From contig BCKQ01000004.1 in NCBI GenBank assembly GCA_001600695.1, positions 1,022,204-1,044,433 of the forward strand: a stretch of 22,230 nucleotides of DNA. The letters are read 5' to 3'. Below, piece by piece: positions 977 through 20,597 of the stretch. Every line of letters begins with the position of its first letter. Position 1 is the first letter of the stretch. Below the pieces are notes generated by a model. That model had not been told where the DNA came from. It worked only from the letters and a program-made list of their open reading frames with translations, and searched no databases. The position numbers were made by a program, and so were the translations under genes. This DNA is from Ascoidea asiatica JCM 7603 (lineage: Eukaryota > Fungi > Ascomycota).

Positions 977-1690
977 ATGCTACCGACTCCTATCGTTAAA
1001 GCTGATTTCAGTAAAATTTATGAACCAGCAGAAGATTCCTTTCTTTTGTTAGATTCTCTAGAAGCAGAAAAGAATTATTTAAATAAAGAATTCATATCTA
1101 ATACTAATAATAATATCTTTAAAATAATAGTTGAAATAGGGACTGGATCTGGAATAATAACTACTTTTTTACAAACTTCAATATTTGATCAATATAATGA
1201 TAGAATAATATACTTAACTACAGATTTAAATCCATATTCTTGTAAAACTTCACTTGAAACAAGTCAATTAAATAACAATAAAAATAATTTATATATGGAT
1301 TCAATTCAATGTGACTTAGTAAATTCAATAATTCCAAATTCAATAGATTTATTAATTTTTAATCCACCTTATGTTCCAAGTTTAAATGATGAAATTCCTT
1401 TATTACCATTAACAAATAATAAAATTTTATCAAATAATCAATTATTAGATTTAGCTTTATTAGGAGGTGATGATGGTATGATTATTACAAAAAAATTATT
1501 AAAGAAATTGAATGTAATTTTAAATAAAAATGGTATTGCATATATATTATTTTGTGCAAGAAATAAACCGGAATTAATAATTAAAAATAAAAAAGAATAT
1601 TTAAATGGTAATTTTGATATTAAAAAAATAATTTTTAGAAAATGTGGTTGGGAAGAATTATCAGTTTTGAAATTTACAAAACTAGATTAA
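977..1690 (+). CDS. MTQ2: eRF1 glutamine methyltransferase catalytic subunit (HemK2/N6AMT1 family), 237 aa
   Basis: N-terminal MLPTP...YEPAEDSFLLLDSLE, SAM-binding EIGTGSG, catalytic FNPPYVP, LALLGGDDG, and C-terminal RKCGWEELSV, all typical of Mtq2. Confidence 0.93.
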   Translation: MLPTPIVKADFSKIYEPAEDSFLLLDSLEAEKNYLNKEFISNTNNNIFKIIVEIGTGSGIITTFLQTSIFDQYNDRIIYLTTDLNPYSCKTSLETSQLNNNKNNLYMDSIQCDLVNSIIPNSIDLLIFNPPYVPSLNDEIPLLPLTNNKILSNNQLLDLALLGGDDGMIITKKLLKKLNVILNKNGIAYILFCARNKPELIIKNKKEYLNGNFDIKKIIFRKCGWEELSVLKFTKLD

Positions 1691-11891: not shown

Positions 11892-14072
11892 ATGGAAAAT
11901 GAAATTTCAAGACCTAAAATTCAAAATAAAGCTCCAGCTCCTTTACAAATATCTGCTGAACAAATTGTTTTAGAATCTTATTTATCTCAAAATAATGATA
12001 ATGATGAAAATGATTTTGAATATCAATTTAAGAAAAAAAATTCAAATATAAAATTATTAGATAAAGAAGAATTATTAGATTATCAAAATAGAAAAAGAAA
12101 AGAATTTGAAGATGCTTTAAGAAAAAATTTACAAGATATTCAACAATGGTTAAGATATGCAAAATTTGAAATAAATTTAAATCAATTTGAAAGAGCAAGA
12201 TCAATATTTGAAAGATCTTTAAATTTTAATAATAATAATATTTCAAATCAAATTAAAATTTTTTTAAATTATATAAATTTTGAATTAAATTTTAAAAATT
12301 TTAATCATGCAAGAAATTTATTAGATAGATCAATTTATAAATTACCAATGGAAAATAAAATTTGGTTAAATTATATAAAAATTGAAGAAAATTTAAAAAA
12401 TTTTAATAATGTTATAAAAATTTTTGAAAATTGGTTAAATAATAAAAAATTTAATTTAAATCCTGGTATAATTCCTTGGAATTCTTATATAAATTTTTTA
12501 AAAAAATATAATTATAAAAATAAATTTTATAAAAAAATTAATAATGTATTTCAAAGATATTTATTAAAATTTCCAATTTTAAATACTTGGTTAAATTATT
12601 TAAATTTTATGAAAAAAAATGGTGATATAATTTCAATAAGAAAAATTTTTGAATTATGTATTGATTCTACTTTAAAATTAAATAATAATGATTATAATTC
12701 AATTAATGAAAAAATTTTAATAGATTTTGCAAATTGGGAAGCTGAAAATAATAATGAAATTGAAAGATCAAGAAGTATTTATAAATTTGGTTTATTATAT
12801 CTTAATGAAAATAATAATAAAAATTTATTTAAAAATTATACTTTATTTGAAAAAAAATTTGGTAATAAATTAGAAATTGAACAATCAATATTATTAAAAA
12901 GAAAAAAAAAATATGAAAATGATTTAAAAAAAAATGTAAATGATTATGATTCATGGTGGTTATATATATCTTTAATTGAATCTTTATATTCAAATTTATC
13001 AATTAATGAAAATAATGAAAAAATTATAAATATTTTTGAAGATTCAATTAAAATTCAACCAAATATTTTAGAAAAAAATTATTGGAGAAGATATATTTAT
13101 TTATGGATAAGATATATATTTTGGGTTGAATTAAATTTAAAAAATTTTGAAAAAGTAAGAGATTTATTTGAAAGAATTTTAAAAATTATACCACATAAAA
13201 TTTTCACATTTTCAAAAATTTGGATTTTATATTCAAAATTTGAAATACGACAAAATAATTTAAATAAAGCAAGAAAAATTTTAGGTATGTCAATTGGATT
13301 ATGTCCAAAACCAAAATTATTTAAAGAATATATTAATATTGAATTAAAATTAAAAGAATTTAATAGAGTTAGAAAATTATATGAAAGATATATTGAGAAA
13401 TTTCCAGAAATTATAGAAAATTGGTTAAATTTTGCAAAATTTGAAGAAAATTTAAATGAAATTGAAAGATCAAGAGGAATTTATGAAATTATAATAAATT
13501 TAAATGAATTTTCTTTTTCTAATAAAAATTTAAAAAAAATTTGGAAAAAATATATTGAATTTGAATATGATCAACAAGAATATAATAATTGTAGAAAAAT
13601 TTTTTATGAATATTTAGAAAAAAGAAATTATGAAGTTCAAATATGGATAGATTTTGCATTGTTTGAATTAACAATTCCAACTGAAGAACAATTATTACAA
13701 CTTGAAAATATTAATAATGATGAAGAAGAATTAGAATTTGATGTGACTCCAGAACAAGAAGAAAAATCAAGAGAAATTTTTGAAAAAGCTTTAAAATATT
13801 TCAAAGATAATAATTTAAAAGAACAAAGAGTTATAATTTATAAAGCATATAAAGAATTTGAAATCCAAAATGGTAATGAATTAGAAATTGAAAAATTAAA
13901 TAAAAGAATGCCAACAGTTATTAAAAAAACCAAAAAATCAGAAGATGGTCTTCAAGAAGAATATATTGATTATTTATTTCCAGAAGATGTTAAAAAGAAT
14001 AAAACTCTTAGTGGATTACTTGCCAAAGCAAATAAATGGAAACTTAATCAATTGCAATCTTCTACAACATAA
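11892..14072 (+). CDS. CLF1: Pre-mRNA splicing factor Clf1/crooked neck (HAT repeats), 726 aa
   Basis: KIQNKAPAPLQISAEQI, RKRKEFEDALR, ERARSIFERSL, YWRRYIYLWIRY, IPHKIFTFSKIW, ARKILGMSIGLCPKPKLFKEYI and EEYIDYLFPED, plus repeated HAT units. Confidence 0.96.
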   Translation: MENEISRPKIQNKAPAPLQISAEQIVLESYLSQNNDNDENDFEYQFKKKNSNIKLLDKEELLDYQNRKRKEFEDALRKNLQDIQQWLRYAKFEINLNQFERARSIFERSLNFNNNNISNQIKIFLNYINFELNFKNFNHARNLLDRSIYKLPMENKIWLNYIKIEENLKNFNNVIKIFENWLNNKKFNLNPGIIPWNSYINFLKKYNYKNKFYKKINNVFQRYLLKFPILNTWLNYLNFMKKNGDIISIRKIFELCIDSTLKLNNNDYNSINEKILIDFANWEAENNNEIERSRSIYKFGLLYLNENNNKNLFKNYTLFEKKFGNKLEIEQSILLKRKKKYENDLKKNVNDYDSWWLYISLIESLYSNLSINENNEKIINIFEDSIKIQPNILEKNYWRRYIYLWIRYIFWVELNLKNFEKVRDLFERILKIIPHKIFTFSKIWILYSKFEIRQNNLNKARKILGMSIGLCPKPKLFKEYINIELKLKEFNRVRKLYERYIEKFPEIIENWLNFAKFEENLNEIERSRGIYEIIINLNEFSFSNKNLKKIWKKYIEFEYDQQEYNNCRKIFYEYLEKRNYEVQIWIDFALFELTIPTEEQLLQLENINNDEEELEFDVTPEQEEKSREIFEKALKYFKDNNLKEQRVIIYKAYKEFEIQNGNELEIEKLNKRMPTVIKKTKKSEDGLQEEYIDYLFPEDVKKNKTLSGLLAKANKWKLNQLQSSTT

Positions 14073-15417: not shown

Positions 15418-16278
15418 ATGAATTTTAAATTAATATTTATAATAAATTTAATTATAATATATATAATAAATTATTCAATTGCAGATGTTTCAGTTTCGAA
15501 ACCTTTAGCAGATTCAACATTCACAGTTTCAAATTCTAAAGTTTCTGTTGAAATTAGATGGGTTGATTCAGGTGGTTCACCAAAAATTTCATCAGCTACA
15601 AGTTATACATTTACATTATGTACAGGACCAAATTCAAATATTATTGCATTAGATGTTATTGGTTCAAATATTGCTTCAAGTAAATTTAAAGATGATTATT
15701 CATATACAGCTTCAATTGATTCAAGTATTGGTAAAACTGGAATTTATTATATTCAAATATATACATTATATTCAAATGGTTTTACAATACATTATTCAAA
15801 AAGGTTTAAATTATCTGGGATGACTGGAACTCAAACAACATCTGGATTAATATCAGATAATCCACCAGATGCACAATATTCATTAAAAACTACAGGTACA
15901 GATACAACAGATGGTACATCAATTGCTACAATAAATTCAGCATCATTTTCAATACCATATACTTTACAAACTGGTAAAACAAGATTTGCACCAATGCAAA
16001 CACAACCTGGTACTACAATCACTGCAACTACATGGTCAATGAGATTTCCAACATCATCAGTTAGTTATTATAAAACAATTCAAGGATCACCAATTGTATT
16101 TTCAACAATTACACCAGCTTGGTCATATGTACGAACATCATATATTAATCAAGCATCAGCAGCACCATATCCAAGTAATAATGGTGGTTGGTATAGTGCA
16201 AATCATAATATTATTAAACCAACAAAAATTAATATAAATACTTTACATAGAAGATGGATTGATGATGATAAAGAATAA
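15418..16278 (+). CDS. KRE9: Secreted beta-1,6-glucan synthesis protein Kre9/Knh1, 286 aa
   Basis: Signal peptide ending IADVSVSKP; YTFTLCTGPN; TIHYSKRFKLSGMTG; Ser/Thr-rich linker; SFSIPYTLQTGKTRFAPMQTQPG; STITPAWSY; C-terminal RRW. Confidence 0.93.
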   Translation: MNFKLIFIINLIIIYIINYSIADVSVSKPLADSTFTVSNSKVSVEIRWVDSGGSPKISSATSYTFTLCTGPNSNIIALDVIGSNIASSKFKDDYSYTASIDSSIGKTGIYYIQIYTLYSNGFTIHYSKRFKLSGMTGTQTTSGLISDNPPDAQYSLKTTGTDTTDGTSIATINSASFSIPYTLQTGKTRFAPMQTQPGTTITATTWSMRFPTSSVSYYKTIQGSPIVFSTITPAWSYVRTSYINQASAAPYPSNNGGWYSANHNIIKPTKININTLHRRWIDDDKE

Positions 16279-17173
16279 TTACATATTTATTTATTTATCT
16301 ATTTATTTATCTATTTATTCATCTATTTATTCATCTATTTATTTACACATGGACTATGACTTTGACTATATGGCTTGTTTACTTTATTAATTTTGATATG
16401 TATTTTGATTTGTATTGTTTTGTTCTTTTTTTCGTTTCTTCCTTTTTTCGTTTCTTCCTTTCTTCATATTTCATTATATCTTTTATTTATTATAACTATT
16501 TTGTTTCATTTTTTAGTTTTTTTAGCTTTTTTTTTTTTCTTTTTATCAGCACTTTTATTATTAAAATACTTACTTACTTATTATTATATAACTAGGTTTT
16601 TTTATCTGTAATTTAATCTGTAATTTTATTAAAAAAATAAAAAGGTACCTTTAATTATTATGTTACTATAGTTACTGTAAACATTGTAAATACAATGTAA
16701 GATTAGTTAATGTGATTTTTAGATTATGTAAATCATAAAAACAAAGCCTCGATGTGAAAAGTAGAAAAAAAAAAAAAAGGGTCTCTCATACATTTAAAAT
16801 ATCTTTTAGTAAATTAGTTTCGTTTAGTTTTAGTTTCTTTGTTTTTTTACGTGTTTTAGAATTCGATCTCTTCAAAAATCAATTTCAGAAACTTTGAAGT
16901 AATAACTTCTTTTAAATATAAAAAATCAAAAATCATGTTATAATCTATTTTTAAAACCAATTACATTTCAATTCCTGTAAAATAAATAGATGAGAGTGAA
17001 TAAATAAATAAATAAATCAAATCACCAAAGCCATTTGCCATACACAAGGAAAGAAACCTTTTTTTTGATTTGCTCACATTCTTTTCATTGGCGCTTCTGC
17101 AAAAAGAAAGTTTTGAGAATGAGAGAAAATATTACGTAATCGGAGAAAAGAGAAAGAAGCAGAAGAAAGAGAG

Positions 17174-17222
17174 CACGTGGCTACCGCTGAATGAGTCACG
17201 AGTCAGCAGTATGGCTGAGTCA
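17174..17222. promoter_or_regulatory. Cluster of Gcn4/AP-1-like sites and an E-box
   Basis: CACGTG 17174-17179, TGAGTCA 17192-17198, GAGTCA 17200-17205 and TGAGTCA 17216-17222, all within 50 bp. Confidence 0.55.
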
Positions 17223-17454
17223 CAGCTGACATAATCCGGGTCCGAGTGAAGCCAATTCTGCAACGTTACGGTGGAAAATCAGGGAAATCAGGGAAATCAG
17301 ATAAATTAGACGCTGTCTGAAGTGAAAAGTATCAGCCGAGAATCAAAACACAAGAATCCACAAAAGCGTTCACGAGGTTTTCCTCTTTAACTGGTATGAG
17401 ATTATTGTGAGAGCTCAAATTTATAGTTGAAAATCCCCTTTTGAAATGCTTTAT

Positions 17455-17511
17455 ATTTAGTGCACATTGCCCTGGTTTCCTATTTTCAGGCACGATTTAG
17501 TGCACATTGCC
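17455..17511. repeat. 17-bp perfect direct repeat ATTTAGTGCACATTGCC (two copies, 40-bp period)
   Basis: Copies at 17455-17471 and 17495-17511. Confidence 0.9.
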
Positions 17512-17746
17512 GTGGAAACAACGGAGTCTCATTACAGCCATTGTTCAGATTTGTAGGCGAATTGGGTGACAGTGTCAATTAGGCTGAAAATAGTATTGGA
17601 ATGATTCAAAAATATTCATTTCTTCTCCAAAAATGATATAATTTACATCATTTAAATCGCTTTTTAAACCATAATAAGAATCAAATCAGACTTGAATGAA
17701 ACCATTCTTCAAGCTCGTCTTTTTTACATATCTTTCATCGCAATTC

Positions 17747-17877
17747 GATACAGTGGCCGAGTGGTTAAGGCGCCGCCCACAGATTAAAATTGTTGTCAGA
17801 TTTAAAAAACTGACTCGACAATAAATCTTGAAAGGCGTTAGGTTTATCCTTCGCAGGTTCGAATCCTGTCTGTGTCG
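17747..17877 (+). tRNA. Intron-containing tRNA with CAG anticodon and serine identity, tRNA-Ser(CAG); exons 17747-17783 and 17833-17877 (82 nt mature), 49-nt intron 17784-17832
   Basis: Acceptor stem GATACAG/CTGTGTC with discriminator G73. D-arm/A-box TGGCCGAGTGGTTAAGGC. Anticodon stem CGCC/GGCG with loop C-A-CAG-A-[intron]-A. Long variable arm AGG-TTTAT-CCT. T-arm/B-box GCAGG-TTCGAAT-CCTGT. The intron sits at the canonical 37/38 position, and C32 can pair with the antepenultimate intron base G17830. Confidence 0.88.
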
Positions 17878-17880
17878 TTG

Positions 17881-17887
17881 TTTTTTT
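17881..17887 (+). terminator. RNA polymerase III terminator (T7)
   Basis: Run of seven T beginning 4 nt after the tRNA discriminator base. Confidence 0.85.
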
Positions 17888-18938: not shown

Positions 18939-19726
18939 ATGAGTACATTAACTTCAATAAATAATAGAAATAAACTTTCAAAAGATATTGAAGAATTAAA
19001 TTATAAAATAAAATTAATTGATAATGAAGAATTACTTTTAAAAAATCAATTAATTAAAAAAAATCAAAGATTAAAAGATTCAAATTTAACTAAAATTTTT
19101 AATGATCTTGATAATAATAACATTAATAATAATAACTCAATTAATAATATAAATGAAATAAAATTAAAAAAATTATATGAATTAAAAGGTCATTATAAAA
19201 ATAATAATAGAATTCAAAATATTAAATGGTCTTTTGATAGTAAATTTTTAATTTCTTCTGATAATGAACATAGATTATTATTATGGGATGCAATGAATGG
19301 TTTTAAAATTGGAATGTTAAAATTAAATCAAACTGAATATCCAACTTGTTTATCAATATCTAATGATAATAGATTTATTTCTTTAGGTAATTTAGATAAT
19401 AGATGTATAATTTATAAATTACCTGATTATCAATCAATTTTATCTTATGTATTTAATAATCATTCAAATAATAATATTTCAAATAATTATAATAATAAAA
19501 ATAATAATATTGAATTAAAAAATATTTATAATGATAAACCAAGTATTAAAAATATTTTACAAATTTCTGATAATAAAGGTTATATGACTGAATGTTCATT
19601 TATAAAAAATGATGAAAATAAATTAATAACTGCTTCAACAAAATTAATTAATTTATGGGATTTAAATAAAAATCTAATTATTCAAAAATTTGAACAAGGA
19701 ATTGATGAAATTTTATCAATGGATTT

Positions 19727-19760
<34 letters not shown>

Positions 19761-20597
19761 TTATTTATTGTAGGATGTTGTAATGGTAGTGTTAAAGCAT
19801 ATGATTTAAGAATTAGTAAATCAATTTTAAAATTTAATATTAATAATAGTTATAGTCCTAGTAATGGTAATGGTAATACTCATATCAATGGACATAATAA
19901 TGATAATAGCTTTAGTAGTAGTGGTAGTAGTAATGAATATTTAATGAATTATGGAAATGATATAACTTGTTGTAAATTTTTACCAATAAATAATGGTATT
20001 CATAAACAATTCTCAATAGGTACTAATGAAAGAGATATTTACCTTTATGATCTAAGATGTGGTTCAATGGAATTGCAAAAATATTCTTATAATGATGTCT
20101 GCGGTTTTAATAATATAAATATAAATAATATTAATAATAGTTTTAATGGTGAAAATACAAATTCTATTATAGATGAATTAAATTTATATTCAAGAAATAA
20201 TCCAAGAGTTGAAATTGAAAATTTTAATTATAAATATGATTCAGAATTGGAATTTAATTCAAAATTGATTAATGGATTATTACCTCAAAATCAAGAGAAT
20301 ATAAATCACCAAGATAATACCTTAAACAGTACCCTGAATAATACTCAGAATAATAACCTGAATTCATATATTAATAGTGAAGATGATGATGGTATTATAG
20401 ATATAAATTTTTCTCAATCTTGTAGATTAATGTTCACCACAATTGATGGTATTGGTGGAGTTGTATGGGATATATTAAAAGGCACTATTGTCAAAAAATT
20501 TGATGATATTGGTCATATGGCAATTAGTCCAAATGGGTTAGCATTGGCTACAGATTCAATAACTAAAAATACCATTAATATATCGTGTGTGACATGA
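18939..20597 (+). CDS. Divergent heterotrimeric G-protein beta subunit-like WD40 protein (Ste4-like), 552 aa with Asn-rich insertions
   Basis: N-terminal coiled coil (LKDSNL), then G-beta-ordered motifs: LKGH, WSFDSKFLISS, LLLWD, GNLDNRCIIY, GYMTECSF, LITAS, LWDL, LSMD, FIVGCC, YDLR, DITCCKF, YDLRC, INFSQSCRLMF, VVWDILKG and ISPNGLALAT. Confidence 0.75.

Follow-up and report, generated by a model that had tools for sequence, protein, structure and literature searches.

A serine-type tRNA gene with anticodon CAG in Ascoidea asiatica JCM 7603 and the dual decoding of CUG as serine or leucine

Which amino acid is brought to CUG by a tRNA that joins a serine-type body to the anticodon CAG? This question is raised by a tRNA gene on the forward strand of contig BCKQ01000004.1 of Ascoidea asiatica JCM 7603. 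The gene lies in a stretch of 22,230 nucleotides that was analysed as a whole and is called the window in the following. The original prediction, made from the letters of the DNA, described a serine body with a CAG anticodon and proposed that CUG is either reassigned from leucine to serine or decoded in two ways. With high confidence we identify the gene as a tRNA-Ser(CAG) of A. asiatica JCM 7603 (tS-CAG-B), namely, of the two copies there, the one at the ancestral locus, and conclude that CUG is dual-decoded as serine and leucine. The gene is already known, having been published in 2018 and 2024 together with its origin, its effect and the tRNA that competes with it. The sequence, anatomy, family, gene set, synteny and CUG rarity described below come from the present analysis; the ratio of serine to leucine is taken from the papers.

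The gene matches the Rfam model RF00005 from end to end with 37.1 bits (gathering score 29). A run of ARAGORN on the window missed it. The sequence can be parsed into a cloverleaf with an acceptor stem of 7 bp, a D arm and a T arm, and the anticodon loop reads C32 A33 C34 A35 G36 A37, followed by the intron and A38. Cloverleaf, Pol III boxes, terminator, anticodon, G73, A37 and the 11-nt variable arm were all recovered exactly where they had been predicted (Table 1). U is nearly invariant at tRNA position 33. In this tRNA an A takes its place, and pair 27.43 of the anticodon stem is a C.U mismatch; the original prediction had named neither. The precursor is predicted to fold with -40.6 kcal/mol (z = -3.7), and none of 200 shuffled sequences folded equally well. 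In the minimum-energy fold the D and anticodon arms adopt another register than in the cloverleaf, which rests on homology to the Rfam family. Exon 1 is the same in a second copy on contig 11 and in a Saccharomycopsis-like gene of a metagenome contig (L115), and the variable arm shares 10 of its 11 bases with a Ser(GCU) copy of the genome (L010).

Table 1. Coordinates of the tRNA-Ser(CAG) gene, its synteny markers and the other CAG tRNA genes of the genome. Positions are those of the window unless a contig is named.
Feature	Position	Strand	Basis or remark
tRNA-Ser(CAG) exon 1, positions 1-37	17747-17783	+	sequence, Rfam match
Pol III A box, D arm	17754-17764	+	sequence; tRNA numbering 8-19
C32 and unusual A33	17778-17779	+	both paired with intron end in precursor fold
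Anticodon CAG, reads CUG	17780-17782	+	sequence
A37, anti-determinant against LeuRS	17783	+	base from sequence, role from papers
Intron of 49 nt, canonical 37/38 site	17784-17832	+	internal hairpin 17789-17822; U-G at -4/-3
tRNA-Ser(CAG) exon 2, positions 38-73, Ser(GCU)-type body	17833-17877	+	sequence comparison
Long variable arm, 11-nt hairpin (3 bp, 5-nt loop)	17840-17850	+	fold, sequence; main SerRS recognition element
Pol III B box, T arm	17856-17866	+	sequence
Discriminator G73	17877	+	sequence
T7 Pol III terminator	17881-17887	+	sequence
MTQ2 (eRF1 methyltransferase)	977-1690	+	synteny marker of ancestral Ser(CAG) locus
KRE9	15418-16278	+	PF05390, PF10342; synteny marker named in PMC11342251
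Second tRNA-Ser(CAG) (L028)	contig 11, 18893-19024	minus	50-nt intron; between ILV6 and ATG11
tRNA-Leu(CAG) (L020)	contig 5, 479233-479375	minus	62-nt intron; single copy; adjoins TRA1

SerRS recognises its tRNAs by the variable arm and G73 and takes no account of the anticodon. LeuRS, according to published work, needs A35, G37 and A73 and is blocked by A37. For comparison, 43 leucine and serine tRNA genes with a shared D-arm pattern were gathered from the genome. All leucine genes of this set carry G37 and A73, and all serine genes carry A37 and G73. The gene in the window has A37 and G73, not the leucine combination. In a tree of tRNA genes built with the anticodon removed, both Ser-type CAG genes were placed inside the serine tRNAs (100/98) as sisters of Ser(GCU) (92/99); a phylogeny of this kind had been proposed as a check. 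The three Ser2-type CAG genes cluster together (97/94). Trees of such short sequences are weak, yet all measures agree. Exon 2 is identical to Ser(GCU) at 37-41 of 45 positions, to UCN-box serine tRNAs at 29-34 and to leucine tRNAs at 18-23. Tree, G73, A37 and exon 2 identity support a serine-type tRNA and bear out the predicted serine body. By the identity rules of SerRS and LeuRS, the mature tRNA should therefore carry serine to CUG.

Exon 1 is less distinctive. Without the anticodon it matches Leu(CAG) at 28/34 positions and Ser(GCU) at 28-30/34, and C27, C28 and the first five acceptor pairs are common to the Ser(CAG) gene and Leu(CAG). Such likeness would fit a leucine tRNA, or a leucine/serine chimera that accepts both amino acids and is itself the source of the ambiguity. 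However, G73, A37 and exon 2 are of the serine type, positions 29, 30, 32 and 37 are as in Ser(GCU), and only serine has been reported from the near-identical tRNA of A. rubescens. We regard this reading as very improbable. A chimera with exon 1 of Leu(CAG) in particular was not supported: exon 1 lies at about the same distance from both candidates, and the sites in common are dispersed along it. If the two parts met exactly at the intron, one pair would remain in the anticodon stem, and the shared acceptor start is missing from the Leu(CAG) genes of Wickerhamomyces ciferrii and Saccharomycopsis.

The serine-type tRNA would read CUG only if its intron is removed in the right place. When the 49-nt excision was slid along the precursor, cuts at or after base 36 yielded CAG, and cuts farther upstream yielded UGA, CGA or CAA. 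The predicted fold joins A33 and C32 to U(-4) and G(-3) at the intron end, and this pairing supports the canonical site between positions 37 and 38. This U-G is kept in the contig 11 copy and in L115, while the remaining intron has diverged. At the level of sequence, splicing at 37/38 yields the CAG anticodon of tS-CAG-B (CUG-Ser2, Ascoideales), and a published northern probe for the Saccharomycopsis malanga tRNA crosses the same spliced junction. Were the 49 nt cut out five bases farther upstream, U33 and anticodon UGA would stand in the remaining loop, with intron end and A38 completing a perfect UGA loop, so that a shifted cut would give an ordinary tRNA-Ser(UGA). Against such a product, eukaryotic tRNA splicing is established to cut at 37/38, the UGA loop is found neither in the contig 11 copy nor in L115, and the genome already has six ordinary Ser(UGA) genes. 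Since it is confined to the window copy, the UGA loop is best seen as a product of chance. The shifted splice was rejected on this lack of conservation and is, in our judgement, practically out of the question.

With splicing at 37/38, the gene can be compared to the known Ser(CAG) systems. Its derivation from Ser(GCU) and its A37 are both as described for tS-CAG-B. No difference was found from the published tRNA-Ser(CAG) of A. asiatica (PMC6041473; Krassowski et al. 2018, PMC5951914, tS-CAG-B; PMC11342251), with which it shares the origin from Ser(GCU), A37, G73, two near-identical copies, the Leu(CAG) competitor and the neighbours MTQ2 and KRE9. It is the same gene. Within CUG-Ser2, Saccharomycopsis and A. 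rubescens have an identical exon 1 including A33 (seen in L115 and in the S. malanga probe) and the linkage to MTQ2. However, their Ser(CAG) genes have a different variable arm and a shorter intron (15 nt in L115). Moreover, Leu(CAG) is lost or irregular in these yeasts and CUG encodes serine only, whereas Leu(CAG) of A. asiatica is intact.

The genes of Candida and other Serinales (CUG-Ser1, tS-CAG-A) likewise combine a serine body with CAG, G73 and a purine at position 33. They originated independently, from UCN-box serine tRNAs, and have G33, mostly G37 and no competing Leu(CAG), whereas the A. asiatica gene comes from Ser(GCU) and has A33 and A37. The similarity of the 5′ end to the Candida albicans tRNA-Ser(CAG), to which the original prediction had drawn attention, is real for one Ser1-type metagenome gene that starts with the same five bases (L142); two others (L111, L138) start differently. 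Given the separate origins, it does not indicate descent. Descent from a Candida gene was rejected, as the gene is sister to Ser(GCU) and its exon 2 is closer to Ser(GCU) than to the UCN-box serine tRNAs. As a separate observation, a tRNA-like sequence was noticed at L121:5396-5500 (metagenome contig JACCDV010586277.1); it has a long insert, G73 and a T arm of the serine type. It reads CAG with G33 and A37, or GCA in a different register, and its host is probably a eukaryote.

The neighbourhood of the gene identifies the copy. According to O Cinneide et al. 2024 (PMC11342251, Fig. 1 legend), tRNA-Ser(CAG) is present in two copies in strain JCM7603 and in a single copy in strain CBS457.69, and the copy that JCM7603 alone possesses has the Saccharomycopsis-type neighbours MTQ2 and KRE9. 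Both neighbours are present in the window, and the gene is therefore taken to be the JCM7603-only copy. CFT2, the third marker of the tS-CAG-B synteny, was not seen in the window. On metagenome contig L115, CFT2 and MTQ2 are followed by the tRNA with the identical exon 1, 133 bp after MTQ2.

Several further features of the surroundings were recorded. A CLF1/crooked-neck-like gene at window positions 11892-14072 has a GC content of about 15% and zero CUG codons. S. cerevisiae has CLF1 close to CFT2 and APC2, which usually adjoin the Ser2 tRNA-Ser(CAG). The closest relative of MTQ2 (57%) was found in metagenome contig L059 (Logan ERR14064710), where, as in the window, the next gene lies on the opposite strand; this sequence possibly comes from another Ascoidea species. 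A 21-nt direct repeat (17455-17475 and 17495-17515, 95% identical, 40 nt apart) lies about 250 nt upstream of the tRNA. The non-coding region 17030-17600 is GC-richer, contains one CACGTG box and a pair of TGAGTCA motifs at about 17174-17225, and resembles a regulatory region for Pol II. When it was compared to the flanks of about 50 further tRNA genes of the genome, nothing matched, and there was thus no sign of an LTR; an LTR upstream of the tRNA was rejected on this basis.

Three genes with a CAG anticodon were found in the genome: the Ser-type genes of the window and contig 11 and a Leu-type gene on contig 5. Across 82 exon positions the two Ser-type copies differ at a single one, yet their introns and flanks have diverged, which points to selection. 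The difference is at base 70, where the window copy has a U3.G70 wobble and both the contig 11 copy and L115 have U3-A70. This wobble is compatible with a silent or weak duplicate in the window, with serine at CUG supplied mostly by the contig 11 copy. The window copy also appears dispensable, because it is lacking in strain CBS457.69, and leucine slightly exceeds serine at CUG despite a 2:1 ratio of serine to leucine genes. However, promoter boxes, terminator and intron-end pairing of the window copy are intact, its exons have been conserved amid diverged introns and flanks, and it occupies the ancestral locus. We therefore consider a silent or weak duplicate unlikely. In view of the strain that lacks it and of the one extra change, the window copy might add little to the tRNA pool. 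As to the other copy, the contig 11 gene lies about 6 kb from GLN4, and in S. crataegensis (L063, near 20450-20560) a Leu-type CAG tRNA is found near TRM1 and just past GLN4. That both have GLN4 in their vicinity may be coincidental.

A search of the genome for a second CAG tRNA with A73 and G37, which had also been proposed, led to the gene on contig 5. This Leu(CAG) is intact, with U33, G37, A73 and an anticodon stem of five pairs. In the tree it groups with leucine tRNAs and the TRM1-linked Leu(CAG) of W. ciferrii (88/91), with which it is the same over positions 8-37. Its first five acceptor pairs are those of the Ser(CAG) genes, unlike the other leucine tRNAs of the genome. A TRM1-linked Leu(CAG) is present in the W. 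ciferrii and S. crataegensis loci and was not found in loci L062, L064 and L065. In A. asiatica, TRM1 lies on contig 2, apart from Leu(CAG); its best match is that of A. rubescens (64%). Two Ser(CAG) genes and one structurally intact Leu(CAG) make up the gene set published for stochastic CUG decoding in A. asiatica.

Proteomic data for this species are available from Muhlhausen et al. 2018 (PMC6041473), who reported 501 leucine and 418 serine spectra at 110 CUG sites, with both residues at 44 of these sites, corresponding to about 45% serine and 54% leucine. In A. rubescens, which has a near-identical serine tRNA and is without Leu(CAG), only serine was found at CUG (PMC6041473). The intact Leu(CAG) and the published spectra argue for dual decoding rather than plain reassignment, so that of the two outcomes left open by the original prediction the former is retained and the latter is not. 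Its inference that serine is inserted at CUG holds for about one half of the decoding. Complete reassignment, with CUG read as serine only and Leu(CAG) idle, would agree with the 2:1 excess of serine genes and with the Ser-only CUG of the relatives A. rubescens and Saccharomycopsis. On the other hand, Leu(CAG) has kept all the features listed above, leucine accounts for the larger share of the published spectra, and conserved CTG sites align to leucine in 44% and to serine in 8% of cases. Complete reassignment is thus highly unlikely.

CUG is a rare codon in this genome: in 13 ORFs it accounts for 14 of the 1049 codons of the Leu family (1.3%), which equals the published value for A. asiatica; taken alone this is weak evidence, as the genome has about 23% GC and other G-ending codons are also rare. 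The seven main ORFs of the window contain only five CUG codons, with none in MTQ2, CLF1, KRE9 or the phosphatase gene, and the single CUG of TRM1 is located in its unconserved N-terminus. A G-protein beta-like WD40 gene (window 18939-20597) has long Asn-rich inserts, and both of its CUG codons fall inside one insert.

The unusual A33 is common to the window copy, the contig 11 copy, L115 and S. malanga. In our metagenome scan, all 38 distinct CAG tRNAs with A73 have U33 and the Ser1-type genes have G33; C. tropicalis has C33. With A33 in Ser2 and non-U33 bases in Ser1, U33 has therefore been lost in both independent Ser(CAG) lineages. G33 was reported to lower leucylation and decoding, and a 2024 review describes the role of A33 in mistranslating tRNAs as unexplored. 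The text of the searched Ser2 papers, whose figures are not searchable, yielded no mention of A33, the C27.U43 mismatch or the intron-end pairing. For the change from GCU to CAG, three separate anticodon point mutations were named as the only obvious route (Krassowski et al. 2018, PMC5951914). We offer a different route as speculation, and a doubtful one. If an intron-bearing Ser(GCU) gene lost its old positions 33-36, four bases in all, the former A37 would come to stand at position 33, and the first bases of the intron would supply the new CAG-A by the same single step. Introns are present in every Ser(GCU) gene of the genome; CAG occurs within the first eight intron bases in two of them and at the very start in none. 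If true, a deletion origin would avoid the three separate mutations. A33, the trace of this event, may moreover reduce decoding or leucylation, like the G33 of Candida, and thereby account for an even split between serine and leucine despite the 2:1 gene ratio.

The proposed course of events is as follows. The A box, B box and T7 tract suggest that the window gene is transcribed by Pol III, and the position of the intron and its conserved end pairing suggest that the splicing endonuclease removes it between 37 and 38. By established identity rules, SerRS would charge the tRNA through the variable arm and G73, with A37 keeping LeuRS off; the published proteomics of A. asiatica and A. rubescens bear on this charging indirectly. 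Judged from sequence, transcription, splicing and charging of this copy are probable, and the charged tRNA would put serine at CUG. The Leu(CAG) of contig 5 would read the same codon, leaving each CUG to be filled at random with serine or leucine, about half each according to the published proteomics, and the cell would cope through the rarity of CUG.

CUG in A. asiatica is the one known nuclear sense codon whose reading varies at random between two amino acids. Programs that take the name of a tRNA from its anticodon mislabel or miss tRNA-Ser(CAG), as ARAGORN did with the window copy, and CUG in the A. asiatica genome should be translated as serine or leucine.
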